Notes under the pieces: generated by a model | Database searches by the model: none | The model's input: only the letters and a program-made list of their open reading frames with translations | What the model was told of the DNA's origin: nothing | Part shown: piece by piece, positions 29,367-59,483 of the stretch | Numbering within the stretch: position 1 is the stretch's first letter | Layout: each line of letters begins with the position of its first letter | Translations under genes and position numbers: made by a program | Source of the DNA: Malacoraja senta | Taxonomy: Eukaryota | Assembly (NCBI GenBank): GCA_038087875.1 | Contig: CM075985.1 | Span: 40,548,001-40,612,000 of the forward strand | Direction of reading: 5' to 3' | Length of the DNA stretch: 64,000 nt

Positions 29367-29411
29367 CGCTCGACAACTGGTGACGACCCATCGTATTTTT
29401 ATTCTGATTGC
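29367..29411 (+). promoter_or_regulatory. MHC X1-X2-Y-like promoter module
   Basis: cgctcgacaactggTGACGAcccatcgtatttttattCTGATTGc, 75-120 nt upstream of the leader ATG, in locally CpG-rich DNA; spacing resembles the X-Y module of MHC promoters; Y box has 1 mismatch. Confidence 0.55.
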
Positions 29412-29486
29412 ATGATGAGATCCTGCTTTGATGTTGGTGAAGTTAGGCTCAGTTGTTGCTGTTGACTGCGAGAGGTAGTGCGCGAA

Positions 29487-29538
29487 ATGATTCTGTTCAT
29501 CTTGCTGAGTTTCTTCCGCGTACAAGGGGCTCAAGCAG
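29487..29538 (+). CDS. Signal-peptide (leader) exon of an MHC class I-like gene
   Basis: ATG..MILFILLSFFRVQGAQA+G then GTAAGT donor; phase 1 matches the alpha1 exon acceptor and regenerates G-P-H-T-L. Confidence 0.7.
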
Positions 29539-29834
29539 GTAAGTTAATGATTCTCATTTTATTCGCTACTGGCTAAACGCGTCTTGACTTTATCTCTATC
29601 TGGACAGGAGGCGACTCAGGTTAAAAATGCGCGCGTTAGTCTGAGATTCATGCGGACGTTAAAAGGGTTTAATATCCCCTGTTTCAGTACAATCCAGACT
29701 GGAATTTCTGTATTGATTTGCACCATGCCTCGTTTCCTTTGTGGAAGAAGGAACTGCAGATATCGGTTTAAACTGATTTTAACTCGTGTAAAACAAACAG
29801 GAGCGAGGCACTCACTAGGGTTTCCTCGATGCTC

Positions 29835-30720
29835 CGCTCTTGCCCCCCCCCCCCCCCCCCCGCATTCGTAACAAGGACAGAGTCACCCTTGTCTTCACCT
29901 TCCACCCCATTAGCCGTCGCATACAGCATATAACCCTCCATCATTTTGCCATCTCCAACAGGATCCCACTACTGGCCACATCTTCCCATCTCCACCTCTT
30001 TCTACTTTCAGTGGAGACCGTTCCCTCCGAAATTCCCTGGTCAACTCGTCCTTTTTCACCCAAACCGCCCCCTCCCCAGGTACTTTCCTCTGCAACAGCA
30101 GGAGATGCAACACCTGTCCCTTTCCCTCCCCCCTCGACTCCATCCAAGGACCCAAACAGTCTTTCCAGGTGAGGAAGAGGTTCACTTGCACCTCCTCCAA
30201 CCTCATCTACTGTATCCGCTGTTCCAGGTGTCAACTTCTCTACATCAGCGAGGCCAAGCGCAGGCTGGGCAATCATTTTGCTGAACTACTCCGCTCAGTC
30301 CGTCTTAACCTATCTGATCTCCTGGTTGCTCAGCACTTCAACTTCCCCTCCCATTCCCAATCTTACCTTTCTGATCATCGCTTGTCAGAGGGAGGCCCAG
30401 TTCAAATTGGAGGACCAGCACCTCATATTTCGCTAGGGTAATTTACAACCAAGCGGTATGAACATTGAATTATCTAACTTTAAAATAGCCCTACCTTTCC
30501 CTCTCTACCCCTCCCCCTTCCCAGTTCTCCCACCGGTCTTACTGTCTTCGACTACATTTTATCTTTGTCCCTCCCCTGACATCAGTCTGAAGAAGGGTCT
30601 CGACCCGATAGGTCGCCCATTCCTCTCCAGAGATGCTGCCTGCCTGCTGAGTTACTTCAGCATTTTGTGTCTACCTTCGAGTTAAACCAGCTTCTGCAGT
30701 TCTTTCCTACACAAAGTGCA
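29835..30720 (+). mobile_element. Penelope-like 3' fragment with terminal repeat
   Basis: NKDRVTLVFTFHP, PGTF.CN, SSNLIYCIRCSRCQLLYISEAKRRLG (GIY-YIG); hammerhead-like motif at 30587-30614. Confidence 0.9.
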
Positions 30721-30769
30721 TTGTTTGACAGGTTCATGTTTATGGCCAAATGTGGGTAGAGAGCGAGGC

Positions 30770-32200
30770 ACAAGCACAATGCAAAATCAGTAAAAGATTA
30801 GCACACACTGTGGATTTTGTTATTGACTGAGTGACAACTCTTAGCTCCAAACGTGCGGTCGTCACCTTTACGTGGTTCATTAATGATTTGGATAAGGGGA
30901 TTGAATGTTTTGTGGCCAAGTTTGCAGATGATGTTAAAATAGGGGGAGAGGCATGCAGTGTATAGGAAGCAAGGACTTTGCAGAAGGACGTGTACAGGTT
31001 AGGAGAGTGGGCAGGAGGTAGCAGATGGAATTCAGTATAGCAAAGTGTGGGAGACATGCATTTTGGTAATAAGAATAAATGCGTAGATTATTTTACAAAT
31101 GGAGGGAAAATCCAGAAATCGGAGGCGCACAGTGACATGGGAGTGTTGGTGCAGGACTCCCAAAAAGTTAATTTGCAAATTAAATCGGTAGTCAGGAAGG
31201 TGATTTATATCAAGAGTACTGGAATACAAAAACAGAGATGTCATTCTGAGGCTCCAAAAGCGCTGGTCAGGCCACATTTGATGCACAGTGTGCAAATTTG
31301 GGCGCCCTATCTGAGGAAGGATGTGCTGGCTCTGGCTCAGAGGAGGTTTACAAGAATAATTCCATGAAAGAGTGGGTTAGCATATGGTGAGCGTTTGACA
31401 GCACTGGGCCTCTACTCGCTGTAGTTGAGAAGGTTGAGGGGGGAACCTCATTGAAACTTACAGAATAATGAAAGGCATAGATAGAGTGGATGTGGAAAGG
31501 ATGTTTCCACTGGAGGGTGAGTCTAGGACCAGAGGTCATAGCCTCTGAATTAAAGGGTGGTCTTTTAGAAAGGAGGTGAGGAGGAATTTCTTTAGTCAGA
31601 TGGTAGTTAATCTGTGCAACTCATTGCCACAGAGGGCTGTGGAGGCCAAGTCAGTGGATATTTTTAAGGCAGAGATCGACAATTTCTTTATTAGAACGGG
31701 TTATCATGGGGAGAAGGCAGGAAAATGGGATTAGGAGGCACAGATCAGCCATAATCGAATGGTGGAGTAGACTCGATGGACCGAATAGCCTACTTCTACT
31801 CCTGTAATGTGAACGTGTACAGGTTAGGAGAGTGGGCAGAGAAGTGGCAGATGAAATTCAGTATAGCAAAGTGTGGAGACATGCATTTTGGTAATAAGAA
31901 TAAAGGCGTGGATTATTTTACAAATGGAGAGGGAATCCAGAAATCGGAGGAGCACAGTGACATGGGCGTGCTGGTGCAGGACTCCCAAATAGTTAATTTG
32001 CAAATTGAATCGGTAGTCAGGAAGGTGATTTATATCAAGAGGACTGGAATACGACACAATACCGCCCGATTTGTAAGAGTGCCAAAGGTCACAGGGAGAT
32101 GACAGCGGAATGGCGTTGAGAGGGAAAGATAGGTTAGCCATGATTAAATTGTGGAATAAACTCGATGGACTGAACAACCAAATTCTGCACCTTTGACTAA
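30770..32200 (+). mobile_element. CR1 LINE 3' half plus a local duplicate of its middle (31814-32051)
   Basis: FADD region at ~30920, KALVRPHL..VQIWAP, RRFTRIIP; the second segment repeats 30989-31230. Confidence 0.88.
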
Positions 32201-33790
32201 TGAAGTGAGTCAAAGTTCAGAACATGAGGGATGATCTTTTTAATTCTTCCCAGACTGGTGTGTCTGGAACCTAAATTCACAGTTTTAAAATAAGTGTTCA
32301 GACATTCTTATGGCACCAAAACACGGTGACACTTGTGTATTGCCTAGGTTAGGTCTGCTATATAATTGTAGGTAGTTGTATGCGAAACGATGCATTTCGC
32401 TGTACCTAGGTGCATGTGACAATAAAATATCATTGAATCATTGAACTCAGTGCAGTAATGAGATGAAATCTTTTCACCCAGAGGGTAATTAATCTTTCAA
32501 ATTCTCTGTCCAAGAAGGCTGCGGGCATTCAGTCAATCAGATGCTTGAGGCACAGATAGGAAGATGCTTGGATACAAAAGGAAGTGTGCGTTAGTTCGGA
32601 AAAATGGTGGTCTGCTAGAGAATCGGTTATGATCTTATAGAATAGCAGAGATTGAGCACAAAGGATGAATGGCACCATTTTGCTTATGTTAGGTTTGTTC
32701 CCACTCCACAAGAGAGTCCAGAAGGAAAGTAAGTATAGAGTGTTCAATTGTCATATGTGCTGACTACAAAACAATGACATTCTTGCAGCAGCTTAGCAGA
32801 CCGGTAAGTCAATACAAATAGATAAGATACTAAAAATGTAGTAAATTGATAATCCCAATACTTGTGCGAAAACACCTCGAATACTTTGTTCAACCAACGA
32901 CAGTCCATAGGTCTACAGGGTCCGACTCGACACATCACCTATCCATTCTCACCAGCAATGCTGCCTGATCTGCTGAGTTACTCCAACACTTTGTCTGGTT
33001 TTTGTTCATTATTCATAGTTGAGTTTAGTGTAGTTCATGGTTCAATATACGGGAAGATTTTAATGATCACATTCTAGCACGCATCTCCAGAGCCAAACAA
33101 AACAATGACATTCTCCTTCGATGGTAATAATCTAATTTGGTGAAAGGGGAAACAGACATAGATATAAAGAATAACATATTTATAGCAGTTCCATTGTAGG
33201 AAAATGCTTCAATAAGATTCGTAAGAATATTATTCTGTAACATTTTACTTCGAGCAGTATAATGGCATTACATGACAATTAGCAAAATAAAAATTTAAGG
33301 TGCATCTTAAATAAAGAATAAGAGGAAGGGATATTTAGAGAGCAATTCTACGACATAGACCTGCTCTTCAGATGAAGTACTTACATTTGTGAATATTCAG
33401 GATGTTATACTGCCCGGTTCATCATGGGTACTGCTCTCCCCACCATCGAAGGGATCCACACGAGACGCTGCCTCAAAAAGGTAGCCAACATCATCACCCT
33501 GGCCACACTCTCATTACCTCCTACCATGGGGAAGAAAGTATAGGTGCTTGAAAACCATGACCTCCAGGTTCAAGAATAGCTTCTTCTCAACAACTATCAC
33601 GCACGTGAACACTACCAAACGCTAACCTCAACTGTGAAATTCTATGGACTATCTTTGGTTGCAATAAGGACTTTGAGATTTTATTTGCCCTAGTATTGTG
33701 GTTAGTAATTTATTGATTGCATTTTTGTTAGTTTTACTATGTATTTTCTATGTGTTTGTCTGCACAGACCTGTTATCATGCTCTGAGTAA

Positions 33791-34048
33791 NNNNNNNNNN
33801 NNNNNNNNNNNNNNNNNNNNNNNNNNNNNNNNNNNNNNNNNNNNNNNNNNNNNNNNNNNNNNNNNNNNNNNNNNNNNNNNNNNNNNNNNNNNNNNNNNNN
33901 NNNNNNNNNNNNNNNNNNNNNNNNNNNNNNNNNNNNNNNNNNNNNNNNNNNNNNNNNNNNNNNNNNNNNNNNNNNNNNNNNNNNNNNNNNNNNNNNNNNN
34001 NNNNNNNNNNNNNNNNNNNNNNNNNNNNNNNNNNNNNNNNNNNNNNNN
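33791..34048. other. Assembly gap (258 N) adjoining (AT)n
   Basis: N run read directly. Confidence 1.
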
Positions 34049-37000
34049 ATATATATATATATGACAATTAAGCACTCAACTCTTGATTAAAACTGGAAGA
34101 TGGATTGCAATGCTGAGGAACAATGCCGAGGGAGGAGCTGCGTAGGGAGGAACTGCAGATGCTGGTTGAAACCGAAGATAGACACAAAAAGCTGGAGTAA
34201 CTCAGCAGGTCAGACAGCGACTCTGGAGAAAAGGAATAGGTAGCGTTTCAGCTCGAGACCATTCTTCAGACTGATAATCAGGGGAAAGCGAAACGAGAGA
34301 TACCGACGGTGATATAGAGAGATATAAGAACAAATGATTGAAATATATGCTTTGAATGAGCTGTTGGTCTTAAAAAATATATAGAATGATCAGAGTTTAA
34401 AATCTGAATATGTTTTCATCAGAAAGATGATGAGTGAGTGGGATGGAGCAAGCTAGCACAATTATGACAAAGTCTGAAGAAGGGCCTCGATCAGAAACAT
34501 CACCCATTCCTTCTTTGCAGAGATGCTGCCTGTCCCACTGAGTTACTCCAGCATTTTGTGTCTATCTCTATAGCTGGTCAGGCAGCATCTCCGGAGAACG
34601 TGGAAAGATTACGTTTGGGGTGAACACCCTTCTACAGAGTGAAGAAGGGGTCTTGACCCGAAACATCTATCCATCATCACATATCCATGTTCTCCAGGGA
34701 TGCTGCCGTACCCACTAAGGTGCTCCAGCACTATGCGTCTCTTTCTTTGTGAACCAACATTTGTAGTTCCTTGTTTCTACAGTGTAAATTGACTGTCATT
34801 TGTAGGTAAGTGATAGAATCTGGAGAGAGATGATGAGAATTTGCAGAGAATAAGAATGGGTTGGTCAAGAGCAAGAGTTTAATTGTCATCTGTACTGGCA
34901 ATGGAACAATGAAATTCTTAAGCACATATTAAATATAAAACATTCAATGACACAATCAATTAATATTAGTTATATTAGGTAACCAGACCATAACAGTGGA
35001 AAAACAAAACTGCAACCAAAATAAAGTCCACCACAGATCAGAGTTGTTGAGGAATGGTTGTGGTTAGTGTTGTGCAGCGTTTAAAAGTCTGCTGCCCGTG
35101 AGAAAAAAGCTGCTCTTAAACCTGGAGCTAACAGTTCCCAGGCTCTCTAACCTCAAAGACAGTTCATTGGTTCAATTGTATTTTATTTGTGGCAAGTACC
35201 GAGGTACAGTAAAATTCATTTTTGTATACAGTTTAGTACAATTATCACTATACATAAGCCCTTAGATACATCTTAGATAATCATCTCAGATACAGTACAA
35301 GTATGTAGCAGTACTACGCTTAGACAGCATACAGTGTCGCCTGTTTTCGGTGCCATTTTCACGTCCCAGTTGTTGCAAGTGAGGGTTCTTGGCCTGACCA
35401 TGAGGCCCATTGTCCTGGTGTTGTTTCAGGGTCGGCCTGGCCAACCGAAGCTGTGGTGTCCTCTACTACTGCAGGGTGCAACTGGTCCTTGTGCCCGGCC
35501 TCTTGGAGCGGCGCCTGGAACAGCCAAGCCCCAGGCTGCTGCAGGGCCTCCAGCGCCCATTCCGCCGTTGAGGCATTGCATTCCCTCCCGCAGCCAGTCT
35601 GCCTATAAGTCATCCATCTGACCCCTTCCACTCTGGCCGGTCGAGCTTGGCCTTCCAGTTTGGTCTTCCATCATCGGTGCACAGCGAGCAAGAACTCGGT
35701 CCATGATGGATGGGCCAGATCTTCCGGGTGAATTCCCGGTCCAGGGTGGCCGGCACTGAGAGTATGGCTAGGGTGGTGTGGGCCTCTGATGATATTAGCT
35801 GTCTTTCTGAGGCAGCACCTCCTGTAGATCCATTCAATGGTGGGATGGAATGGTATGGAATTAGTGCATCATGGTCAGTGGACTCTGGCGGCTGAATTGT
35901 CTGTTTGTGTGTCTCTGTGACTTATGTGTGGAGAATGCTTTGAAAGTAAGAGTAGGCGAAGGGGCATTCTAAATGATGGGATGCACATATCATTGTAAAG
36001 GGGGCCCTCAAAGTATTGACCTGTAAAATGCTAAATCCTTCTGTCCAGGGATGCTGCTTGTTTCACTGCGTTACTCCAGCATTTTGTCTCTATCTTTGGT
36101 GTAAACCAGCATCTGCGGTTCCTTCCTACACAGACACATGAAGGATTCACACAATGGATTCTGTTTGTATGGGGTTTATACGTTCTTCCTGTAACCGCTC
36201 GGGTTTCCTCTGGGTGCTCCGGTTTCCTCCCACGTACCAAAGACGTGTGGGTTTGTAGGTTTATTGACCGCTGTGAATTGCCTTGAGTGTGTAGGATGTG
36301 AAACAGGGAAAACACAGAACTAGTGTATGGGCGATTGATGGTCAGTGCAGACTCAGTGGGCAGAATGGCCTGTTTCCATGCTGCATCTGTTAAAAAAGAT
36401 TGGTGAGCGTGATACCCAAATTCAAACGTCACGGAAAAACCAACACATCATAGTTTGTTCAGACAAGAACACCCAAGAATGTTTTTATTCAAAGAGAACA
36501 ACAAAGTAATAAAGGTTTGCATGTACAAAGTCCAACCGTGAGCATTGCTTAATCTAATCTTATACTTACAACATTGTAGACATAGGGCATTCAGCACAGG
36601 GAGGCTGTCCCATTGGGGGGGAGGGGGGGCAGAGAACAAAGGGGGAACAGTGGGGGTGGGGTCGCCACCAAGAATGAAGGTGGAAATGGTGGGGATGGGG
36701 CTGCTGCCATGTGTGGCAACAGGCAGTGGATAGGAGGACTGTTCGGTACTTTTGTAACTTTGTCTGCGGCAACGCATGGCGACACCTTTGTACTGCCTAG
36801 GTTCAGCTTAATTTATTGTCACGTGTACCGATGTACAGTGAAAAGCTTTTTGATGCGTGCTAACCAGTCAGTAGAGAGAACATACATGGTTACGATCAAT
36901 GCTTTTATCGTGTAGGGATACATGATAAGGGAATAATGTTTAGTGCAAGGTGAAGCCAGCAAAGTCCAGTCAAGGATAGACCGAGGTTGTGTGGAAAACA

Positions 37001-37184
37001 AAGCATTTCACTATACCCATGTACCCTGGGTACATGTGACAATAGAGTATCATTCATTCATTCATTAGTCCTATTCCTCCCACCTTATTTTCCATAGAAC
37101 ACAGTCACCCATGGCCGCCAATGCTCCTTTGATTTTTTTTTGTGCCATTTACCTGTGTTGAGCTGGTTAATGGGTTTTGTGAAA

Positions 37185-37500
37185 TATAGCACAGTGGTGC
37201 AATGGTAGAGAGCTGCTGCCTCAAAGTGCCAGAGACCCTGGTTCAATCCTGACCTCGGGTCTGTCTATGTGGAGTTTGCACGTTTTCGCTGTGACCGCAT
37301 GGGCTTCCTCCGGGTGCTCCGGTTTCATCCCACACCCCAAAGGCATGCACGTTTGTAGGTTAATGTGCCTATGTAAATTGCCCCGAGTGTAAGGAGTGGA
37401 CGAGAATGTGGAATAACTAGAGTGAATGGGAGATCAATGGTCAGCATGGACTCAGTGGGCTGAAGGGCCCATTTCCATGCTGTAACTGTAAACTAACCTA
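37185..37500 (+). mobile_element. HE1/V-SINE-like SINE
   Basis: gcacagtggtgcaatggtagag..ggttcaatcctgacc head; ends taaactaacctaaa. Confidence 0.85.
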
Positions 37501-37789
37501 AAGACCAATAAAATTACTGATGTATTGCAAGTGGCTGGATTCAAAGCTATTTAAACTACTGAAGACAGGTTCTGACAGAAAACGTTACCTGTCCATTCCA
37601 TCCACAGATGCTGGCTGACTCACTGAGTTCCTCCAGTATTTCATTGCTCAGGATTCCAACATAGTCTACTTGTTTGAATAATACTGTTGTTTGGTATTTA
37701 TGTGATATTTTTGCATTAGAATTTCATGCTGAAATGTTTATACCTTGAACAAAGGGCAGTCACGGTAGTTCCGCACGATACCGTGAATG

Positions 37790-38030
37790 CAGTGCCGGAG
37801 TCCCGGGTTCGATCCCGAGGTCTGTACGGAGTTCGTACGTTCTCCCTGTGACCTGCGTGGGTTTTCTCTGAGATCTTTGGTTTCCTCCCACATTCCAAAG
37901 ACGTGCAGGTTTGTAGGTTAATTGGCTTGGAAAATGTAAAAATTGTCCCTAGTGGACGTTAATGTGCCACTGGTCAGCACGGACCCGGTGGGCCAAAGGG
38001 CCTGTTTCCATGCTGTATCTCGAAACATAG
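37790..38030 (+). mobile_element. HE1/V-SINE-like SINE
   Basis: cccgggttcgatccc..gttctccctgtgacctgcgtgggtttt..gggcctgtttccatgctgtatct. Confidence 0.85.
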
Positions 38031-38063
38031 CCACGTTGAACATTGCTGAAAAGGATAGTAAAA

Positions 38064-38390
38064 GCCTTGTCCCACTGTACGAGTTCATTCAAAGAGTTCT
38101 CCCGAGTTTGCCCTGATTCGATCGCGGAGATTTACGGTAGTAGCCACTCGTCGGTACTCGGGGCTCTCGTGGACATTTTTCAACACGTTGAAAAATCTTC
38201 ACGAGTCTTCCCGAGCTTACCTGCCCATAGCGAGTCTTCCCGAGTACCTGCCGTTAGGGTTATAAGCCGCAAAGAGGCGTCCCCGAGCTCCGACGTACAC
38301 GCTACGTTCATTATCCGTGCTTCCCACGAGTTAGATTTTGTTTTAAACTCGGAAGAGCTCTTGAATCAACTCGCATCGTGGGACAGGGCC
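38064..38390. mobile_element. Harbinger-like MITE, same family as 14414-14727
   Basis: gccttgtcccactgtacgag ... atcgtgggacagggcc TIRs and shared internal sequence. Confidence 0.8.
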
Positions 38391-39160
38391 ATAATTCATT
38401 AATGCTTGCAAGAATAATCATGTTAAAATTGACTTTAGTAAAATACAGAAAACGCTTTGCAATATGCAGTAGGTCATATGTGGGGAGGAAAGCAGAGCTA
38501 ATGTTTCCGGCCAGAGACCCTTCAGGACCGGGAAGGAGTAGAAAGAAGAATTGATGAACTGAAGATGCTGGTTAACAAAAACAGCCACAGTGTTGGAATA
38601 ACTCAGTGGGACGGGCAGCATTACTGGAGAACGTAGGATAGTGATGATTCAGGTCGGGACCATTCTTCAGACTGATTGTGAGGATAAATAAAGCTGGAAG
38701 AGAGGAGGGGCAGGACAAAGTATGGCAAATGATAGGTGATAGATACCACCATTACCGCCTCCTCACCCACGTTCACCTATTACATGCCCCTCCTCTGAAG
38801 AATGGTTTCAGCCCGAAACGTTGCCTATTTCCTTCGCTCCATAGATGCTGCCTCACCCCCTGAGTTTCTCCAGCACTTTTGTCTACCTCCTCTCATCCAG
38901 ATTCCTTCATCGCCCCCTCCCCATCCACACTGCCCATACAAACCTCCCATAATTAGTCTGAAGAAGGATCCTATTCCACAACAACATATATCCATGTTCT
39001 CCAGTGATACTGTCTGACCTGTCGAGTTGTCCCAGCACGTTGTTTCTTTTTCTTGGAGAAAAAAAGAAGCATGTTAAGTTGCAGGAAGTGTGGGGGAGGG
39101 AGAATGTCTTTCAAAGATAAACACAGAAAGCTGGAGTAACTCAGAGGGACATGCAGCATC

Positions 39161-40074
39161 ATCCGCTGCCTCGAGGATATAAAGTGTTGGATGGCCCAGA
39201 ACTTCCTCCAACTAAACGAGAGTAAGTCTGAGGTCATCCTTCTCGGACCCTCGAACTCAATCAAAATGATAGCAGGCAGCCTTGGAAGCCTTACCCCACC
39301 ACTCAAACCTCACGTCAAAACCTTGGCGTAATATTTGACTCAGCACTAAAATTTGACAAACAGGTCCATGCCGTGGTAAAAGCTAGCTTCTTTCAGCTTA
39401 GGACGATAGCTAAAATAAAACAATTCTTCCACTTTGATGACCTCGAAAAGAGCATCTACACATTTATCTCCTCCCGCCTAGATTACTGCAACTCCCTTTA
39501 CACTGGCATCAGCCAATCTTCCCTGTCCCGCCTGCAACTGGTCCAAAACGCCGCAGCGAGAATCCTGACGGGCACGCGAAAAAAAGACCACATCACCTCG
39601 ATCCTGGCCTCTCTCCACTGGCTCCCTGTGCGGTTCCGTATACATTTCAAGATCCTCCTTATGTCTACAAAGCCCTCAATGGGCTTGCCACCACCTACAT
39701 TAAAAGTATTCTCTCCCACCACTCCACCTCCAGGTCCCTCAGATCGGCCGACTTGGGGTTGCTGAATATCCCGGGGTTTAGACATAAGCTCAGAGGCGAC
39801 CGCGCCTTTGCGGTTGCAGCACCTAGACTGTGGAACAGCATCCCGCTTCCCATCAGAACTGCCCCCTCCATCGACTCCTTTAAGTCAAGACTAAAAACGT
39901 ATCTATACTCCCAAGCTTTTCTTGACGTCCTCTGAGCGAGGGCTATATGTATATATGTATGTAGTTTGTTTGTTTATACTATTCTTATAACAAATGTAAA
40001 GCACTTTGGCCAACGCCAGTTGTTTTTTAAATGTGCTATATAAATAAATGTGTCTTGACTTGACTTGACTTGAC
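39161..40074 (+). mobile_element. L2 LINE 3' fragment with (cttga)n tail, nested in a Penelope terminal repeat
   Basis: FFQLRTIAKIK, SRLDYCNSL, LQLVQNAAARIL, LASLHWLPVRFRIHFKILL; flanks rejoin as gcagcatc|tctggagagaagg. Confidence 0.93.
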
Positions 40075-40754
40075 TCTGGAGAGAAGGAATGGGTGACATT
40101 TCGGGTCGAAGCTCTTTTCCAGACTTTCAAAGCATTATCCGGTAGAATTTAATGAGATAGACATCTGTTTTTGGTCAAATGCGTTATCTGAAAGCTGAAT
40201 GTAAATTGCACTGTTAAGGCTTTACAATACTTAATTGGTTAAAATGTGCATTAGGGTTAGATCACAGCATGTCTCAATTGCATGTCAACCCAGTATCATA
40301 AAAACAACTGCTGTAGGAACTCAGGTGGTAGAAGAACATCTTTGTAAGTAGGAACTGCAGATGCTGGTTTACACTGAAGATAGACACAAAATGCTGGAGT
40401 AACTCAGTGGGTCGTGCAGCATTTCTGACAAAAAGAAATAGGTGACGTTTCAGGTTGAGACCCTTCCTCACATCTTCAAGAGTCAAGAGTGTTTTATTGT
40501 CATATGTCCCAGATAGGACAATTAATTTCTTACTTGCTGCACAACAGAAGGGAATGAAATTTGGAGGGAATTAAATTTTTCACAATGATTTTTAACTGGT
40601 ACAGTAAATCATTTCTATTATTAATAAACCATTTCCTGTGGTATGTAGTAATATTTTCAAATCAATATTTGAAATGACATAAGACCAAGACTGCATGAGA
40701 AGTCATCTTCTGATACAGTTTAGGATTTGGCAGGAAATGCTAAAAATATGGTTT

Positions 40755-41055
40755 GGCCCGATGGTGCAGCGGCTGATCTGCTGCCTTACAGTGCAAGGGA
40801 CCCGGGTTTGACCCTGACTACGGTTTCTGTCTGTATGGAGTTTGTACGTACTTCCCATCCCATGACCGGTGCGGGTTTCCTCCGGCTGCTCCTGTTTCCC
40901 CCCCACACGCCAATGACATACCAATTGCGTTACTAAAATGCTAAATTGTCCTAAAGTGTGTGCATCGAATAGTGATAGTGTGCGGGGATCACTGGTCGGC
41001 GTGGAATCGGTGGGCTGAGGACCTGTTTCTGCACTGTATCTCTAAATCAAACTAA
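40755..41055 (+). mobile_element. HE1/V-SINE-like SINE
   Basis: Head gatggtgcagcgg..cccgggtttgaccctgac; tail ctgtatctctaaatcaaactaaa. Confidence 0.82.
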
Positions 41056-41639
41056 ATACCCAGAAAGCATGGACAATGTTAAGCTTAAGGAGAGCAAATC
41101 TGAATTTACATTCTGGACCTTCATCATTTATTTCGGCAACTAAAATGCAGCAATTTTATTTACCTCCACAGACGCTGATGGATCATATTTCTGTCAAGTT
41201 TATAGCACCACGTCATTATTTTACCTTCTTTTCTACTGAAAACGGCAAGGTTGTTTGGTCGTTTTTATACTGTAATCATAACCTAGAACATGGGTCTTTT
41301 GCTGATTAATATTGAGAGTCGAGTCCAGCAATACATTCCTCAGGGCTAGAGCAATTATGCTCTTGACCTGCTGTGAATGTATCAGAGAGAAGAGTAAGGA
41401 TGTGTAAAAGTGTAGTTATGCCTGCTGAAGTATGTACATTTTGAGAAGGGAGGGAAATCACCAGTTCAGAAGACATTTAACAATGTTACACTTAAAGCGT
41501 TTATAAATATTTGTGAGGTCGGTTCAGGTTATTTGATTGGAAGGTAATTTTCCCCGAGTGAATGTGGGTGGTAGGAAAATTGAGAGGGAAGGGAAGTTAA
41601 TGGGAATGTGAGTTTAAATAGAAACATAGAAACATGGAA

Positions 41640-41890
41640 AATACTGTCGGTGCAGGAGTAGGCCATTCGGCCCTATGCAACATGATCATCCAAAATCAGT
41701 ATCCGATTTCTGCTTTTTCCCCATATCATTTGATTCCATAGCCCTAAGAGCTAAATCTAACTCTCTCTTGAAAACATCCAGTGAATTGGTTCCACCGCCT
41801 TCTGTGGCAGAGAATACCACAGATTCACAACTCGCTGGTTGAAAACGTTCTTCCTCATCTCAGTTCTAAATGGCCTACTCCTTCGTTTTA
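41640..41890 (-). mobile_element. CR1 LINE 3' end
   Basis: (atagaaac)n reverse tail and ccttctgtggcagagaat..cacagattcacaac. Confidence 0.8.
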
Positions 41891-42029
41891 AACTGACACC
41901 TGGTTCTGGACCCCCGCAACAGTTGCACAGTTTTATGTGGGATTAGTTAGTGCTTGACCGCTCGCACATACACAAGTTTCTGTGTTCGATGACTTTATTT
42001 TCCTCAGAGTTTTGATACAGACGTTGATA

Positions 42030-42330
42030 GTTTAGTTTAGAGATACAGAGCACAAACAAGCCCTTCGGCCCACCGAGTCCGCACTAGCCAGCGATTCCCG
42101 CACTATCGCTACCTTAACGCACACACTAGGGACAATCTAATATTTACACCAAGCAAATTAACCTACAAACCTGTACGTCATTGGAGTGTGGGAGGAAATC
42201 AAAGGTCTTGGAAAAAACCCATGCAGGTCACGGTGAGAACGTACAGACAGCACCTATAGTCAGGATCGAACCCATGTCTCTGACGCTGTAAGGCAGCAGC
42301 TCTACCTCTACTGCACCGTGCCGCCCATAA
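42030..42330 (-). mobile_element. HE1/V-SINE-like SINE
   Basis: Full reverse-complement copy. Confidence 0.85.
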
Positions 42331-44496
42331 TAATGCTGCCCAAAGGAACAGTTTCCTTGTTTTTCAATCATCAATATTCTCACCATAATGGGCCATAAAA
42401 AAGTACTTCCTGTAGAAAACGTTCAGTAAATTGGGGAGAAAAGATTAAAAATAATTGTTAAATTAAATTGTAAAAGACAATGTCAAAATAAAACAAATGT
42501 GATCTATGAACTAGTTGATAGCTGCCTTACCTCAGCCACCATCCACTGAATGCTGCCGAGTGGTATATTTGTGGGATACTTTGTAGGATTACATGGAATA
42601 AAAATATACATCAAACATAATTGATTTAATTTGCACACAGGATGCCAGGTTTTATTTACACTCTATTTGTATACACAGAACAATGCTGCACAAGGCAGGA
42701 TGTATAGGAAGGAACTGCTGAAGCCGGTTAAAACCGAAGATAGACTCAAAAAGCTGGAGTAACTCAGCGGGACAGGCAGCATCTCTGGAGAGAAGGAATG
42801 AGTGACGTTTCTGGTCGAGACACTTTTTCAGACAGGATTTTCTGCCCATGAGATCTAGGCCGACCGTGAAGCCTATTAAATTAATTCCACGTCACCATGT
42901 GGTTTATAGTCCTCTATTTCCTGCTTGTTCATGTGTGTGTCTGCATATCCTCATATATTGTGCTGTAGTATCTGCATCCACCTTTTCTGGGAGTGTGTTC
43001 CACGCACCTACCACGTTCTGTGTCCCTAAGTAGCCTCTTGTGCATCGGCATAAACTGGACGACCATTTTAAAAAGCACGCATTCTGTCTGTCAACACCTG
43101 CTGGATCTCCCAGCTGCTAACCCTTTCAACTCCCCTTCCCAGTACCAGACCAACCTTTAGCTTCTTCCATTGCCAGAGGGAGGACACATGAAATCTGGAG
43201 GAGCAGCACACCATGTTCTACTTGGATAGCTTACAGTCCATGATATGAACATTGAATTGCTTAATTTGAGGCAATACCCTCCCCTCCCACCCCTCCCCCC
43301 CCCCCCACACCCGCTCTTTCCTGTCCACCCTGGGTGTGCACCTATTTCTCCCATTACCACCCACCCTCCCAATCACTCAGTTCCATTCCTCGTTCTTTAT
43401 GCATCTCCCCTCCTCAATTTTCTCATTACACTTTTATCCCCTATCTCTCTCCTCCCCCTGTCTCGTTCCACCTATGGCCCTTCATCTGGCTTTAGCTTTC
43501 ATTCCTCTTATCTCCTTACATGACACCCTTTGTCTCTTGTGTAAGAAGGAACTGCAGACTCTTCGTCAGACCCTTGGTCGCCTTTTCACCTATCTACTTA
43601 TGAAAATCTGTTCTTAAGTCGCACCAGCTTCTCATTTTCACCCAACAAATAGTTTACAATGGCCTGTTTCCCTTATCATCGTTACGTTTTTGCATATCTT
43701 TCATTCATTGTTCTTTTTCTCTCTACATCATTGTCTATATCTGTTTTTCCCTTATCCCCAAAAAAACGATGGGTGATACTGGGTGAAACTTCAGACTGAT
43801 GTTTCGGGTTGGGACCCTTCTTCAGACTAACCCTGCTTGAGACTGAAGTAGTGTCCTGACCCGAAGTGCCATCCAGCCTTTTTCTCCAGAGATGCTGCCG
43901 GTCTCGCTGAGTTACTTTAGCACTTTGTGTCTAAGGTTGATAATTAGTTTTTTATCAAGATTTTTTGGTGATGTTAATTTCTGCAGGTTCACAGGGGAGA
44001 CTGTGAGAGTAAACAGTTGAAAAACTAGTCTAGCAGGAAATGTGTTGTATTTGCGTAAGTGTAAATGTGGGGCCTCTCCAGTGAAATGAGAGGGGAACTC
44101 CCTGACAAAGGGGGATGTGGTGAACTATCAGAAAGTCACCAGGAGGTCATATCAAAACAGAAGTTAAATTTTACATTCATATTTTTAAATTCTGCTCTTG
44201 ATGTACTGGCGTGGTGCAAACCGATTTAGACAACCTACTGTATATTGCAGCTCAAGATGATATAGAGGTATAGCATTGGAACAGGCTCTTCAGCCCACCA
44301 TGTCCACGCTGAACAGCGATCCCCGTACGGTAGCTATATCCTATACACTAGCAACAATTTATAATCTTTACCAAAGCCTATTTTACTTCTGAGTCACGTG
44401 AGTGACTACGTGAAGAAGGCCGTCAGCATGCATGCGCGTCATTACGTCTAACGCATTGAACAACGACTGGCTGGCAGGCGCGTAGCTCCTCCAGCG

Positions 44497-44558
44497 GTAA
44501 ATTTCAAACCTGCAGGTAAGTTTTAAACATATTTCCAGGTTCTGTTTTTTGTCTTGCA
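44497..44558 (+). other. Putative 62-nt GT-AG intron in the DIRS-B 5' leader
   Basis: gctcctccagcg|GTAAAT ... tttttgtcttgcAG|g; same exonic context and length as DIRS-A. Confidence 0.5.
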
Positions 44559-45879
44559 GGAAGTTCTTTTAAAGAGTTTTTCCTGCTGGATATAGTTCGG
44601 GGCGAAGTCCGAACGGGCCGCGGGAAATCCGGTTATGGACCATGGGGAGATCCCGGTCACGCACCGCGGAAGCGCGTGTAGCCGACGGCCGTCTGGTTTG
44701 CTACCCATGTCGCTGACAATGCGGTCAGCGGCTCCCAGACCGCTGTGGTTCCCCAGAAAGGGGGTAAATCCAAGAATAAGTCGGTTAGGCCTATGGACTC
44801 GGAGGAGTCAGGCCAGGCGGGTTCCCCTCCGACATACCTGGGTACGTCCTCGGACGTTTAACCCAGGTGGAGCATGGATAGCGCACTCGGGCATTTATCC
44901 CACAAATGTGGTGCTCAATCATGATATAGGTCCGTAGAAGGGGCCACATCAGCGCATGTATCCTCAGAGGCCTGCGGCAGCACCAGTTTCAGGGCTTCTT
45001 ACGAATCTCCCTCCCTGTGGAGGGTAGTGCGAGTGGTCAGTGTGTAACTGACTTCAAGTTCGGAAGTATGTCCGTGGAACATACTGGGGCACATGCGTAT
45101 GGCTTCAAGGGAATCCTCGCAAACGAAGGTGTTGCTGCCGGATGAGTTGGTTCCAGCCATTGGCAGAAAACCCGGAAGGGGCCAGAGTTCCCCTCACGCT
45201 ACAAGCTTTGCTAGCATCAGCTACCTCACGTCACGTCATTACATGAACAGGTGACAGCTGTAAGATACCATGCACCTGTAAATTGTTCCTGAAAGTGCCG
45301 GTAGTGAGCAGCGCTATCAGGGGTGACATTGGAGGGGGCATGACAACTCAGGAAATGAAACCAGCCGCCGAATCTTCTATTCAGATAAGACCTATCCAAC
45401 AGGTAAGACCTGGATGAAGAAGCAAAAGCTGTCGGACTAATCATGGTACAAACGACGAGCAAAGCTTCATCGTTTCAGCGACGAAACACCCCACGCCTCC
45501 ATCGGCAGTAAGCGGTTCACTGAAGCCGGTGGAAGTTTGTAAGCTGGGCAGAGGTCTTTCAGGCCAAGGCGCAAGCCGGTCTCAGGTAAAATATTAAATC
45601 CATGTACCCTACCAGTCCTACTCTCCAATCAAGGACGGAAATAGAACCCGCATCAGGGTCCTTTGAGCTTACCATAAGACCACCGGTAACCATGGAGGTA
45701 GGTGGTCTCGTTCTTTCCGAAACAAGAGATATGTGGACCATTTACAAGTTGGTAATATTTACACTTGTTATTTGTACAAATGCCAATGATAACATGAGAT
45801 TCAGATCCGTTTATAAACTAAAATTATAACATGTGATTAGTTTATACTGCACAGTATACAAGGGTTCCAAGCAGGCTTG

Positions 45880-46215
45880 GAATTGTGGCCAAAGTTCTCT
45901 TTCGAGGCAGGCTCAGTATTATGGCCAGGTTTGCCTTTCGAGACAAGCTCGGAAATATGGCTAGAGTTGTCTTTCGAGGCTGGCTCAGAATTATGGCCAG
46001 AGTTGTCCTTCGAGGCAGGCTCAGTATTATGGCCAGGATTGCCTTTCGAGACAGGCTCGGAAATATGGCCAGAGTTGTCTTTCAAGGCAGGCTCGGAATT
46101 ATGGCCAGAGTTGTATTTCGAGGCAGGATCAGTATTATGGCCAGGATTGCCTTTCGAGACAGGCTCGGAAATCTGGCCAGAGTTGTCGTTCGAGGCAGGC
46201 TCGGGTTTATGGCAG
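45880..46215 (+). repeat. 36-bp tandem repeat (~9 units) inside DIRS-B pol
   Basis: ttcgag recurs at 45901, 45937, 45973, 46009 and onward; translates as 12-aa repeats EAGSELWPELSF. Confidence 0.95.
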
Positions 46216-49200
46216 GCGGGGCCTGTTCATTGAGAAAGATGGACGATGTCGGTTCATCCTTCATTTAATTCGCATTTGCAGTATGGACATTTCAGAATAG
46301 GAAACTTCGTTACTGTCTAACAACTGATTTGCATAGGAACTTTATGGCATGCATCGATCTCAAAGATACATACTATTCAGTTCCCATTCACATGGATCAC
46401 CGGAGATATTTGAAATTTATCTGGATGGGTGAATGATAACAGTTAAAGCGTTGCAAAATGGGCTAACTTCAGGTCCCAGGTTATTTACCAAATTACTAAA
46501 ACCGGTGCTTGGACTGCTCAGAGCTAAAAAAAATCCCACCTGTTATGGCCTAGCTGGATGATATTCTAAACGCTGTATTTTGCTAAAATTAACTTTCAGC
46601 CGCAAATTATATTTAGGAAATTCGGGTTTCTCATCCATCCAGTTCAATTTAAGTTGATACCAACTAGAGTTATTGATGATTGGGATTTACCTTTAACTAT
46701 TAATTTGTCTGTGACTCCGCCCTAAAGCAAGAGATTGGAATTAATAGGAGCCTGCAACAACCTTGTTGTTATGAAGCAGCCTTCTATTCATCAAGTGTAA
46801 TTGGCAATATAGTAGCTATGTTTCAGCTGTGCAAGTTGGGCCTTTGCATTATCAGAACTTACAAGGTGCAAAGGAGTAACCTCTCAAGTACCATGTAGGT
46901 CATTTTTAACAGACCTATGCTATTACCAGCTGAAGCTACCAATGTCACAAAGGTGGACGACCAGTATTCGGCATTGCTCCAGTAATTATGGTCAGTAAAT
47001 CTTCAGTTATATTACAAACTGATGCTAGTGCTCAAAGATGGAAAATTTCGAATGCCATCTCTAGTTACGGAGGCGGATGGAATTTGCATGAGTTACCAAT
47101 TCTTCAGTTATTGGTATCAACTACCTATAGACACTAGGTGCATTCTAATGGTTAAAGGATTATTGTGCGAATATGCATAATCTGCATGCTCAACTCCAAG
47201 TTGATACACTGTGGTGGTGGCATATGTTAGTCACATGGGTGCAATCAAGTCAAAGTATCCTGTGATAATTTACCTAACCTCATTTGGCGCAGGTGTATCA
47301 TCACGTAAAACCAATGACAACACAGAATGGATGTTGGATCACAAAGTATTTTATGACATTATGGCTCGATGGAACACCGAATATCGATATGTTTGCATCC
47401 AGGCTCATTCACCGGTTGCAAAAATATGTGGCATATCAGTGGCGAGAGGTACATTCTCGCTACACGGGAGAGGAATGTTCTTTTATGTCTTTCCTCCATT
47501 TTGCCTCATCAGTCGGGTCTTGCAATAAATCCAGCAAGATCCCGCGTAAGGTTTCCGTACTGTCTGACTGGCCTATGCAGCCATGGTTCCCGCGAATGTT
47601 GGGAATAATAATAGAACCTTATATGCTTTATCTAAACATAAAACGTTGCAGGTTCAGCCTGTGACTCGGGAAACCAGCCTCTGCATGATAAAACCAATTC
47701 ATTGACTTGCAGACTCTGAGAAGACTGTTCCTGCGGCTCGGGTTGTCAGACCGATCCATGTGTGTGCTCACTGCAGAGTGGAGGGATAGCACCAAAAAAT
47801 CAGTACATTTCCACTTCAGGAGATGGGAAGAGTTTTGTTTAAATGCTAATGTTACACATAATACGGCACAGATAACTGACGTCTTGGAGTTCATTTTCAA
47901 ATAGGTCTTTGACAATAAATTAAGTTATAGTGCCATTAACTGTGCCAAGCGTGCCTTCTCATCATATTTGCTGCAGCGAGCGGGACCCACTCTGTCGGGT
48001 CTCACACTCTGATATCCAGATTTATAAAGGATATCTTTAACACAAATTCTCCCAGGCCCAGGTACACGGAAGTATGGGATATTGACATTGTGTTAACACT
48101 ACTACATAAGGTAGTTACCCTCATGGCCCCGGTCTCAGCGTAACGGGTCCAGTCACTACATAAATTGCGACTGGACAGGATGGTTACATCTGCAAATAAT
48201 ATAATATTTTATGTTTATGATTTAATTAAGCAGAGCAAACCAGGGGCGTCAGGTCTCAAGCTAGTCTTCATGGCATACCCCTTGGACCTTCGGTTATGTG
48301 TGGTCACACATTTACAACAATACGTCATGGTCAACAAGAGCCTTAGAAGCTCTAAACTAGCAAGGTTTGTTAAAACGGGGTTTTGGCTTATGCAGGAGTA
48401 GATACGAATATTTTCAAATCTCACTCCACCCGGGCTGCTACAACATCAGCAGCAAGGGTTATGTACGTTCCGCTGGACCGCATCCTATCGGCTGCAGGAT
48501 GGTCAAACGAACGAGCTTTCCAAACATTTTAAAATAACCCATTGCCAGACCGGGGGTATTTGCCAACTCTATTTTAGATTCAAATTTATAGTTTCCTATC
48601 GGATGAGACGGGTTACTATTATTATTATTTGTTCATTAAGAAGCATCAGTATGTTTTAAATCTATGTCATTTCTGTATGCATTATGAATGTTTCCCTTAT
48701 CTGTGGTCAACTGATGCAGTTGTGCTTGTGTGGACTCGTTTTCACGGCATGAAATCATAGAGCTTTGAAATCTTCACGTGACTCCGAAGTAAAATAGTAA
48801 GATTAAACGAGAACTTACCAGTTTGAAGTTTGATCTTTATTTTATGAGGAGTTACGATGAGCGATTACGTGCCCTTCGCTCCAAACCATCGTATCATAAA
48901 GATCACTCGGTAGTTCTAGTTCTCTCAAATCTTACTATATTCAGTTCAACAACTGTGTTCTGTGATTTCACACCGCTGCTTTGAAAGTTGACGCGCATGC
49001 GTGCGGACGGCCTTCTTCACGTAATCGCTCATCGTAACTCCTCATAAAATAAAGATCAAACTTCAAACTGGTAAGTTCTCGTTTAATCTTACTATTAAAC
49101 TACAAATTAGTCTTTGGAGTATGGGAGGAAATTGGAGCACCCAGGGAAAACCCACAGGTAGAATGTAACAACTCCATACAGACAGCACCCAAGGTCAGGA

Positions 49201-49712
49201 TTGAACCGGGTGGTCTCTTGAGCTATAAGGCAGTAACTCTACCGCTGTTCCACTGTTACCCTTGTTTGGGGGATCATGACAGAAGCCTCCTCCTGGCAAT
49301 CCCCGGAACCGGCGACAACAATGCACTCTGTGACGCGTCGGGCGATCAATTCTGTCAACATGTTGGACGACGACAGGAGCCAACAGAGAGCTACATGTCG
49401 TCTGACACACGAGTGAATGAACCGTAATCAACTGAAGGTTACGACATAAATATGATGTGAAGCAACTAATTGAGAAAGCAGCATAGAGAGTGCAGCATAG
49501 AAACAAGCCCTTTGACCCACCAAGTCCATGCCAACCTTTTTGGTACCTGATCTGTTTTTATCTTCCTGATATTTCCAATACCTACCCTTAGATTTTACTA
49601 TTTAACGACACACGGAGTAATGTATGGTGGACTGTGAACCGAATAACTGCCGTGACTTACCTTTGTGGGTGGAATATCAGAATATCAAATTATTTCCTAA
49701 TGTTGATCAGTA

Positions 49713-50005
49713 CGGGCGGCACGGTGGGGGCAGTGATAGAGTTGCTGCCTTGAAGTGCCAGAGCCCCGGGTCCAATCCTGACTATGGGTGGTGTCTGTAG
49801 GGAGTTTGTACATTCTCCTCATGACCAGTGTGGGTTTTCTCCAAGATCTTCAGTTTGCTCCCACACTCTAAAGAAGTTCAGGTTTGTAGGTTAATGGGCT
49901 TGATATAAATGTAAATTGTGTGTAGGATAGTGTTAATGTGCGGAGATTTGTGCAGACTCGTGCTGAAGGGCCTGTTTCCATACTGTATCTCTAAACTAAA
50001 CTAAT
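49713..50005 (+). mobile_element. HE1/V-SINE-like SINE
   Basis: gggcggcacggtgg head to ctgtatctctaaactaaactaa tail. Confidence 0.88.
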
Positions 50006-50368
50006 TGAAGTAAACTTGACATTTAGAATCATATACAGCATATAAACAGGCCCTTCAGCCCAGCTTACTATGTCGGCCAAGATGCTCCATCTATCCTTGA
50101 CCCACCTACCTACCTTTTAGCTTAATTTAATTTATTATTAATGTCACGTGTACTCTTTTGCAGTGAAAATGGTTATTGTGTGCTGTCCAGTCAGTGAAAA
50201 TACTACATAACAATGAAGCAGTTCACAATGTATAGATACACGATAAAGGGGATCATGTTTAGTGCAATGTAAATCCAATTGGTGTTTTGCCGATTTCCCT
50301 CCAAACCTTTCCTATCCATAGACATTTCTATTACTTGACAATAATTGTATTATTTTATTTGTGTCTAG

Positions 50369-50629
50369 GGCCTCACACACTGATCTATTACTACACCCTG
50401 AACCACGGGGGTACTCATCTACCAGAATATAGTGTCGTGGGTGTACTGGACGATTGTGAGATACAGTATTATGACAAAAACATGGTTATTACAGTTCCAA
50501 GACAGAAATGGATGGCGGCTGCATTTGACAGGAGTTACTGGGTAACAAATACGGTCTCCGAAACTGGTTTCCATGGAATCATCAAAGGGCTAGTCGATGA
50601 ATGGATGCGGAGGCAGAACGAAACAGCAA
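50369..50629 (+). CDS. MHC class I-like alpha1 domain exon (261 nt, phase 1/1)
   Basis: tttatttgtgtctAG|gg..gcaa|GTtagt; GPHTLIYYY..LPEYSVVGVLDD..YYD..PRQKW..YW..RRQNET shows H3, Y7, GxxD, W, Y59, R84 and the N86 NxT sequon of class I alpha1. Confidence 0.92.
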
Positions 50630-51239
50630 GTTAGTTCATTCATTTGAATATATTTGGATTGTGATCACTGGAAATAAAAAAATCTCGAAGAAGTACCTCG
50701 CTGTGGCAGAGATCCAGGTTTGATCCTGATCTCGAGCAAGTTTACACGTTCTCCCTGTGACCATACATATTTCCTCCAGGTGCTCCGGATTTGTCCTAAA
50801 TCTTGTAAACGTGCAGGTTTGTAGGTTAATTGTGCTCAGTAAATTACTGTTGTTGTGCAGAGAATGGGTGAGAATGTGGGTAACATAATGTAGATGTGTA
50901 GGAATGAACTGCAGATGCTGGTTTACAGAGGAGATAGACACAAAATGCTGGAGTAACTCAGCGGGACAGGCAGCATCTCTGGAGAGAAGGTGTAGTTTTG
51001 GGTCGAGACACTTCCTCAGACAGAGTTTCTTCCCTGTCTGAGGAAGGCTCTTGACTGGAAACATCACCCATAACTTCTATCCAGAGATGCTGACTGTTCA
51101 GCTGAGTGACTTCAGAATTGTGAATTGATTATCGATGGTCGGCATGGACTCATTGGGCCGAGTGGCCCGTTTCCATGCTGTGTCTAACCTAATTAAGAAC
51201 TGCAAATGCTGGAAATGTGAAATAAAAAATAAAATGGCA

Positions 51240-51395
51240 GTGGGGGGGAGGGGAGGGAGGGGAGAGAGGAGAGAAGAGGGGAGGGGAGTGGGTGGGAGGG
51301 TGTGGGGTGTGAGGGGAGTGGAGGAGGGGGAGGTGGAGGGGGAGGGAGGGAGGGAGGGGAGGTAGGTGAGTGGGGGTGAGGTGTTGGGAAGTGGA
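51240..51395 (+). repeat. G-rich low-complexity tract (G-quadruplex-prone)
   Basis: Many GGG/GGGG runs read directly. Confidence 0.85.
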
Positions 51396-51409
51396 AGAAC
51401 AAAGGATGT

Positions 51410-53208: not shown

Positions 53209-53324
53209 ACCTGGTATTGGATACTTTATAACATTGTTGGTGAAATGTGAAAACTCTCTGCATACCTTGGGTATTCATTATGAGCACATATTCATGTGTT
53301 CATGATTCATGATTAATTACGTTT

Positions 53325-59300: not shown

Positions 59301-59304
59301 CCGT

Positions 59305-59437: not shown

Positions 59438-59483
59438 AGAGAGAAGGGGGAGAGAAGGGGGAGAGAGAAGGGGGAGGGGGGTG

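Follow-up and report, generated by a model that had tools for sequence, protein, structure and literature searches.

A Skate UGA Gene: Exons for the Signal Peptide and Alpha1 Domain of an Elasmobranch Non-Classical MHC Class I Molecule

Sequence evidence assigns the two exons described here to a skate copy of the elasmobranch gene UGA, which belongs to non-classical MHC class I; one encodes the signal peptide, the other the alpha1 domain. The window, by which we mean the whole 64-kb stretch of DNA that was analyzed, covers two of the approximately six exons of this gene. The explanation that we favor, with a probability of about 85%, combines UGA identity with a class I fold, endosomal cycling and the display of lipid-type ligands, all three predicted. 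Judging from orthologues and the literature, the heavy chain would fold as a class I molecule with beta2-microglobulin, the conserved Tyr-x-x-Ile/Val motif of its tail would direct endosomal cycling as in CD1b-d, and a conserved hydrophobic, lipid-type ligand, not a diverse peptide pool, would be shown to T cells.

The find is correct but not new, for the lineage already has a name and a crystal structure, and orthologues have been predicted in many elasmobranchs. The earlier note on this DNA had rightly recognized a non-classical elasmobranch class I gene; its further statements, that the gene could not be assigned to a named lineage and might be lineage-specific, give way to the placement within UGA presented below.

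Leader and Alpha1 Exons

The features of the locus are as follows, with L001 denoting the locus of Amblyraja radiata.

29393..29538, + strand: exon 1 (5'UTR and signal peptide), coding at 29487-29538, MILFILLSFFRVQGAQA plus the first base of Gly1, donor GTAAGT at 29539
29539..50368, + strand: intron 1, 20.8 kb, containing an assembly gap, with blocks colinear with A. radiata intron 1
33791..34048, no strand: assembly gap (run of N) within intron 1, its flanks keeping order and orientation relative to L001 14615/15291
50369..50629, + strand: exon 2 (alpha1 domain), both boundaries in phase 1 and donor GTTAGT at 50630; 87 residues when the split Gly codon is counted
50630..64000, + strand: first part of intron 2 (over 13.4 kb long), without an alpha2 or alpha3 exon
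51.4-54.6 kb: LINE reverse-transcriptase fragments in intron 2 (RVT_1 match, E = 5e-26)
58.1-59.3 kb: CT-rich low-complexity block in intron 2
59484-59683: second assembly gap, in intron 2

Direct reading of the sequence confirms what had been claimed at the outset, namely a 52-nt leader and a 261-nt alpha1 exon with clean boundaries and matching phase. The coding part of the leader runs from the ATG at 29487 through MILFILLSFFRVQGAQA and one additional G to a CAG/GTAAGT donor after 29538, while the alpha1 exon (50369-50629) follows a polypyrimidine tract and AG upstream of 50369 and ends in CAA/GTTAGT at 50629. Their join is in phase 1 and reads G-PHTLIYYY... without a stop; both exons are intact, with consensus splice sites.

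The pairing of the two exons across 20.8 kb, likewise proposed before, is confirmed by orthologues and by an mRNA with the same join. The latter (L002) is a spliced, intronless contig of 3455 nt from a related skate (Logan SRR11241640), whose first two exons land on both places in the window: nt 6-154 correspond to 29393-29539 and nt 152-414 to 50367-50629, each at 91% identity. This alignment carries the 5'UTR of exon 1 back at least to 29393. The contig contains an uninterrupted ORF of 334 amino acids, and its six exons span 78 kb at the A. radiata locus. The N-termini of orthologues share the layout of exon 1, the skate proteins beginning M(REVVRE)MILFILLSFFHVQGALAGPHTLIYYY, and of the class I exon plan (leader, alpha1, alpha2, alpha3, transmembrane, tail) the leader and alpha1 exons with their phase-1 junctions are seen in the window, the remaining exons being present in the A. 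radiata orthologue. Short contigs from four sequencing runs cross both exon borders into the intron (92-100% identity, no exon enrichment) and are thus evidence neither for nor against splicing. One X2 contig is wholly exonic (50370-50605), which is not a clean junction signal.

Placement in the UGA Lineage

By far the strongest signal among solved structures comes from PDB entry 9CH4, entitled 'Crystal structure of shark nonclassical MHC CLASS I, UGA' and released on 2026-03-18, which the alpha1 domain of the window matches at E = 1e-34 with approximately 62% identity; the next PDB chain follows at 5e-11, and in all, 253 class I chains in the PDB come within E <= 10. Among 1.84 billion representative proteins, the best E value of the same domain is 5e-42. 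The Pfam profile MHC_I is matched at E = 1.5e-5 with 25.1 bits, below its gathering cut-off of 28.3 bits because only half of the model is present (positions 3-83 of 179). Relatives of the gene behave in the same way: the sawshark (Pristiophorus) protein P0003 matches 9CH4 at E = 1e-138, and the orthologue P0160 has 9CH4_A as its top PDB match (2.8e-115, 58% identity over 268 residues), with the next chains at 1e-48 or worse. The AF2 model of P0160 (pLDDT 86) shows the standard class I fold, to which class I chains match at Z values of 25-29.

The phylogenetic tree of alpha1 sequences, which left out UFA and 9CH4 itself, places the window together with Amblyraja, Leucoraja and Pristiophorus in a 100/99 clade on a long stem. 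The domain is approximately 89-90% identical to the RefSeq models of Amblyraja and Rhinoraja, and it keeps 39 of the 41 positions that are conserved in at least 13 of 15 lineage members, the exceptions being G29D and Q75L. RefSeq models of the lineage occur in at least 13 species of sharks, rays and skates. Linkage of UGA to the MHC has been stated (PMC10751288, PMC12562908). Our literature search found no mention of 9CH4 and no primary paper on UGA or UFA, and the supplements of PMC10751288 attach no lineage names to skate accessions.

Architecture of the Locus

The gene has the giant-intron architecture that is typical of the UGA lineage. The window is colinear with the A. radiata locus from upstream of the gene through intron 2, and blocks of its intron 1 match A. 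radiata intron 1 (L001 10.1-41.9 kb) at 83-93% nucleotide identity. The gap at 33791-34048 does not disturb this correspondence, since the match on the 5' flank reaches 33570 in the window and 14615 in L001 while, on the 3' flank, 34151-34270 and 34509-34978 correspond to L001 15291-15411 and 15399-15881, respectively, in the same order and on the same strand on both sides. No N was filled in, and the true length of the gap may differ; being intronic, it leaves the reading frame untouched.

The last colinear match (55238-55285, equivalent to L001 46082-46129) is still approximately 7.3 kb short of the alpha2 exon of A. radiata. In that species the leader is separated from alpha1 by 31.8 kb, compared with 20.8 kb in the window, and alpha2 then follows 11.3 kb on and alpha3 20.4 kb on. 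Searching the 64-kb window by tblastn with four lineage proteins (both strands, E up to 10) revealed no alpha2, alpha3 or transmembrane exon; the matches were to leader and alpha1 only, in keeping with the earlier proposal, which places the remainder of the gene beyond the window. The downstream stop-free segments are LINE reverse transcriptase or low-complexity sequence, and all window ORFs besides the two exons are transposon-derived. The alpha2, alpha3, transmembrane and tail exons must be downstream of the window. With exons lying 10-30 kb apart among transposons, such a gene is easily missed by automatic annotation. In a further difference from the skate orthologues, an upstream segment of 1.8 kb is present as five repeats.

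Alpha1 Residues, Groove and Ligand

Ungapped alignment with the classical molecule 6LUP verifies the class I hallmarks that had been read by eye as Y7, Y59, R84 and the N86 glycan: Y7, Y57 (equivalent to HLA Y59), R82 (equivalent to Y/R84) and N84-E-T (equivalent to the N86 glycosylation site) are all present. The cysteine noticed at exon residue 30 is also there, and 14 of 15 lineage members share it. The reported lack of a charged ERETQ-type stretch in the alpha1 helix is real in this skate, the helix start being uncharged (VTNTVS), but it is not a trait of the lineage, since shark UGA has YWERCT. The same helix start is the part that stands of the claim of a more hydrophobic helix; over the whole groove face, a crude count gives five hydrophobic residues at groove-facing alpha1-helix positions both in the window and in nurse-shark classical UAA.

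Regarding the ligand, the alpha1-helix positions that show polymorphism in classical genes hardly change here across the shark-ray split, as in FHG(I/L)IKGQ. In the alpha2 domain of orthologues, aligned by hand on C101/C164 and KW146-147, T143 is replaced by F and Y159 by L, whereas K146, W147 and Y171 are kept. Of the eight residues that hold peptide termini in classical molecules, orthologues retain six, so peptide or lipopeptide ligands are still conceivable; classical (UAA) molecules combine all eight or nine such residues with a polymorphic alpha1 helix, a combination that was not found here. The Tyr-x-x-Ile/Val tail motif (YQNI/YQTI/YENI/YESI/YNxV) is found in 12 of the 15 aligned lineage models, from 11 species, and the tail motif of human CD1B is YQNI (PMC5002281). 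A review states, by personal communication, that UGA is CD1-like and binds lipids of the CD1d type (PMC12562908), while CD1-likeness and lipid binding have been stated for UFA (PMC10751288).

Alternative Explanations

The notion of a chance pair of ORFs, or of an orphan exon unrelated to any gene, has nothing in its favor apart from the fact that the window holds no more exons, and is ruled out with near certainty by E values of 1e-34 to 5e-42, by the orthologous mRNA with the same splice join and by the colinearity of the window with the orthologous locus. It is improbable, if far less so, that the two exons are the intact-looking start of a duplicate that is dead or silent, the functional UGA being another copy and the present locus being broken downstream or untranscribed. 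The remaining exons do lie outside the window, no transcript evidence was found for this species, the contigs of four runs giving no sign of splicing, and the window has a unique L at position 75, where Q is present in 14 of 15 relatives. Against such decay, both exons are open with consensus splice sites, the lineage-conserved positions are kept almost completely (39/41), the dN/dS of the alpha1 exon is 0.37 versus A. radiata, and relatives show 87-91% conservation of promoter and 5'UTR; moreover, colinearity with the one annotated A. radiata gene speaks for the ancestral locus and against a stray copy. We consider it similarly unlikely that UGA, which has been described as a single- or low-copy gene, has been duplicated in this skate and that the locus represents a diverging paralogue, in which the groove-face Q75L and the uncharged helix start would accompany an altered specificity for ligand or trafficking.

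A different possibility, to which we also assign a low probability, accepts a non-classical class I gene but lets it present peptides, with their termini anchored much as in classical molecules. The earlier suggestion that the molecule may still anchor peptide termini holds weakly, insofar as the three alpha1 anchors (Y7 and the equivalents of Y59 and R84) are kept in the window; K146, W147 and Y171 of the orthologues point the same way, as does the fact that in sequence the family resembles classical class I and MR1 more closely than CD1. The substitutions of T143 and Y159 across the lineage (in the hand alignment) speak against it, together with the near invariance of alpha1-helix positions that vary in classical genes, the endosomal tail motif of CD1 type and the lipid ligands that the review cites for UGA (PMC12562908). 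Retention of peptide-terminus residues is also compatible with other cargo, for chicken YF1*7.1 keeps them yet carries acylated ligands (PDB titles 9EB2-9EB6). Our preference remains with a UGA molecule that would cycle through endosomes and display lipid-type ligands.

No candidates for a lipid-presenting, CD1-like branch of the MHC are older than UGA and UFA, which would carry this function back to the origin of jawed vertebrates. A further skate gene model provides one more data point on the conserved residues of groove and tail; the overall picture of UGA is unchanged by it.

Comparison with Known Class I Systems

Shark UGA (9CH4) is the best solved match by far, and the skate orthologue aligns with it at Z = 29.2. 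The two share the motifs LDGCE (with free Cys30), VPRQxWM and FHGIIKG, the N84 glycan site and, in alpha2, MNRYFKxLLExDC. They differ at the helix start, which in the window is YWVTNT instead of the acidic/basic YWERCT, as well as in G29D and the unique Q75L. The closest relatives are annotated in RefSeq as 'class I histocompatibility antigen, F10 alpha chain-like', and include Amblyraja radiata XP_032898133, Leucoraja erinacea XP_055521884/5 and the Rhinoraja longicauda model; leader and alpha1 are 85-90% identical to these skate orthologues, with which the leader/alpha1 join and the giant introns are shared. In contrast with two of these models, which have an upstream ATG giving the MREVVRE extension, the window has CTG at that site, so translation would start at MILF, as in the L002 mRNA contig.

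The UGA-sister lineage, represented by Leucoraja XP_055486430 (P0007), shares FHGI(I/V)KG and MNxYFKxLLExDC and also has 9CH4 as its best PDB match (2.9e-60); the P0007 gene shares its contig with a copy of UGA. It is ruled out as the identity of the window gene by its alpha1 identity of 44-47% and its lack of Cys30, and its tail is different. Classical UAA of nurse shark (6LUP) has an alpha1 domain of the same length, aligning without gaps, and the same Y7, Y57, R82 and N84 glycan site, but the identity is approximately 30% (E = 5e-11) and the alpha1 helix of UGA is conserved across orders, not polymorphic.

With CD1 of mammals, birds and reptiles, UGA shares a reported functional analogy in its lipid ligands, a Tyr-x-x-hydrophobic motif in the tail of orthologues, in which YQNI is identical to that of human CD1B, and a locus apparently low in polymorphism and copy number. 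Special sequence kinship is absent: the orthologue's best 60 PDB matches by sequence include no CD1 chain, and chicken CD1-1 (24% identity, Z = 25.4) ranks below classical chains. Membership of CD1 is rejected on this sequence comparison, in which MR1 and classical class I chains are the PDB matches next in line behind UGA.

Structure of the gene and pairing of its exons

Judged from its sequence, the class I gene of the window is a further member of the already named UGA lineage and not a new lineage. Two of its exons lie in the window:

29487 to 29538, + strand: coding part of the leader exon from its ATG, MILFILLSFFRVQGAQA plus one further G, read directly
50369-50629, + strand: α1 exon, 261 nt, open, preceded by a pyrimidine tract and AG and ending in CAA/GTTAGT

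The leader donor, read directly in the window, is CAG/GTAAGT after 29538, and a phase-1 join of the two exons yields G-PHTLIYYYTLNHGG...RRQNETA. Re-reading of the sequence found the coordinates, lengths, splice sites and translation of both exons in the earlier note to be all correct. The window has CTG where two RefSeq models have an upstream ATG, so that the start is the MILF methionine, as in L002, a 3455-nt Logan mRNA contig (run SRR11241640) from a related skate.

The pairing of exons 20.8 kb apart, also proposed previously, is borne out by skate protein N-termini and by transcript evidence. Skate proteins start M(REVVRE)MILFILLSFFHVQGALAGPHTLIYYY, in which the same leader is joined to the same α1 as in the window, and one member of this cluster, P0160, is encoded uninterrupted on L002. 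The latter aligns to the 98 kb Amblyraja radiata locus (L001) in six blocks over 78 kb, as a spliced mRNA does; nt 6-154 (exon 1) and nt 152-414 (exon 2) of L002 align to window 29393-29539 and 50367-50629, respectively, both at 91%. Since the A. radiata introns measure 31.8 kb (leader-α1), 11.3 kb (α1-α2) and 20.4 kb (α2-α3), a first intron of 20.8 kb is normal for this gene. The public contigs compared with the window cross both exon borders and are uninformative on splicing. Within 50250-50650, contigs from other samples (X1-X3) match the α1 exon together with its flanking DNA at 92-97% identity and may stem from relatives, alleles or paralogues; an X1 contig of low depth is identical to the window.

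Intron 1 contains an assembly gap (N run, 33791-34048), which, being intronic, cannot alter the reading frame. To its left, the window aligns with L001 as far as 33570 (L001 14615); to its right, 34151-34270 corresponds to L001 15291-15411 and 34509-34978 to L001 15399-15881, with the same order and strand on either side. The alignment supports order and orientation across the gap. Overall, the window is colinear with L001 from about 14.7 to 55.3 kb.

No α2, α3 or transmembrane exon was found anywhere in the window by tblastn with four lineage proteins. The region 3' of α1 holds LINE reverse-transcriptase fragments, a CT-rich block and a second assembly gap (59484-59683). Given that colinearity stops at window 55285 (L001 46129), 7.3 kb before the A. 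radiata α2 exon, and is followed by repeats, α2 is expected past 64000. The repeats noted here are:

51398-54600, + strand: two neighbouring LINE reverse-transcriptase fragments in intron 2 (RVT_1, E=5e-26), of a family with further copies, 76-92% identical, dispersed over the A. radiata locus
58063-59483, + strand: long CT-rich low-complexity block with spurious Pro/Ser/Leu ORFs of 360-590 aa, adjoining the second gap

Upstream region and neighbouring elements

Immediately 5' of the leader (29357-29412, + strand) lie a CCAAT box (29357-29361), TGACG (29381-29385) and CTGATTGC (29404-29411). Because the mRNA contig of the related skate covers 29393 onward, CTGATTGC is, in that skate, part of the transcribed 5'UTR. 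Further upstream are:

18360-27400, + strand: 1793-bp unit in about five head-to-tail copies, starting near 18360, 20119, 21912, 23705 and 25498
17642-18157, + strand: 172-aa ORF (Pfam ALKBH8_N, E=5e-8) in a transposon-rich stretch
8244-12277, - strand: retroelement ORFs, encoding the N-terminal SAM-like domain of a tyrosine recombinase (8244-8882, E=3e-6) and, at 9947-10660, a reverse transcriptase (E=1.5e-14)

The counterpart of the 1793-bp unit is single in A. radiata (L001 3695-5556, 85-88% identity). The ALKBH8_N ORF is probably part of a repeat, not a cellular gene, and the retroelement domains suggest a DIRS-type element.

Placement in the UGA lineage

The 86-residue α1 peptide matches Pfam MHC_I (E=1.5e-5, on the α1 half of the model) and 253 PDB chains of class I molecules, a likeness that, at the sequence level, is more than chance. 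The best chain is 9CH4_A (E=1e-34), from the entry entitled 'Crystal structure of shark nonclassical MHC CLASS I, UGA' (released 2026-03-18); the second is nurse-shark classical class I, 6LUP (E=5e-11). Among 1.84 billion representative proteins the top match is from Leucoraja erinacea (84% identity, E=5e-42), followed by two Pristiophorus japonicus proteins with 61-62% identity to α1.

When the skate orthologue P0160 was modelled (pLDDT 86) and compared with solved structures, 9CH4_A again came first (Z 29.2, 58% identity over 268 residues). In sequence searches, 9CH4 is matched by sawshark P0003 at E=1e-138 and by P0160 at E=2.8e-115; for the latter, the chains that rank next in the PDB, from MR1 and classical class I, reach about 1e-48. 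Leucoraja P0007, whose gene shares a contig with a UGA copy, is much weaker (E=2.9e-60) and hence represents a sister lineage. In a maximum-likelihood analysis of 70 α1 domains, the window forms a clade on a long stem (support 100/99) together with Amblyraja, Leucoraja and Pristiophorus, and a further search added Rhinoraja, Pristis, Mobula, Hemitrygon, Heptranchias, Heterodontus, Stegostoma, Scyliorhinus, Cetorhinus and Mustelus to the lineage. The 9CH4 match and this clade uphold the earlier proposal of a non-classical elasmobranch gene; that note could not place the α1 sequence in a named lineage by eye, but it falls in UGA, and the presumed novelty fails, since UGA already has a name, a crystal structure and predicted orthologues from many elasmobranchs.

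The window keeps 39 of the 41 α1 positions that are the same in at least 13 of 15 members, its departures being G29D (also in Hemitrygon) and Q75L (unique). Cys30, described as 'unpaired' in the earlier note, occurs in 14 of the 15 and, on this alignment, is a lineage hallmark. The protein is about 10% diverged from Amblyraja and Rhinoraja, and dN/dS of the α1 exon versus A. radiata is 0.37, from few changes.

RefSeq isoforms of Leucoraja erinacea LOC129716032 (P0152, P0177) combine a GPR139-like receptor and the UGA heavy chain in one protein (663 and 574 aa). Neither the window nor the 98 kb of the A. radiata locus contains a GPR139-like sequence, and the fusions are probably read-through artefacts of the gene models.

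Groove, ligands and comparison with other class I molecules

In UGA orthologues the ectodomain is of standard class I type and has both disulfides; a transmembrane helix follows, and then a short tail, which carries YQNI, YQTI, YENI, YESI or YNxV in 12 of 15 aligned lineage models. The α1-helix motif FHG-I/L-IKGQ is nearly fixed over sharks and rays at residues that are variable in classical genes, a pattern consistent with one conserved receptor or class of ligand. The possibility that peptide termini are still anchored has partial support. Y7 and the equivalents of Y59 and R84 are present in the window, and K146, W147 and Y171 are kept in the α2 of orthologues, whereas T143 is replaced by F and Y159 by L (α2 numbering inferred from a manual alignment anchored at C101, C164 and the KW motif). 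Peptides or lipopeptides may be ligands for UGA. The heavy chain would pair with β2-microglobulin, recycle via endosomes and present hydrophobic ligands, and the skate protein is probably a presenter of this predicted kind.

Crystal structure and mass spectrometry are said to indicate human CD1d-type lipids for UGA (personal communication, PMC12562908), and a 2023 paper described UFA as CD1-like and located it in a cluster of class Ib genes within the MHC (PMC10751288). The tail motif YQNI of some UGA orthologues is common to human CD1B (PMC5002281). Chicken YF1*7.1 keeps similar peptide-terminus residues, yet carries N-acylated ligands, according to PDB entry titles.
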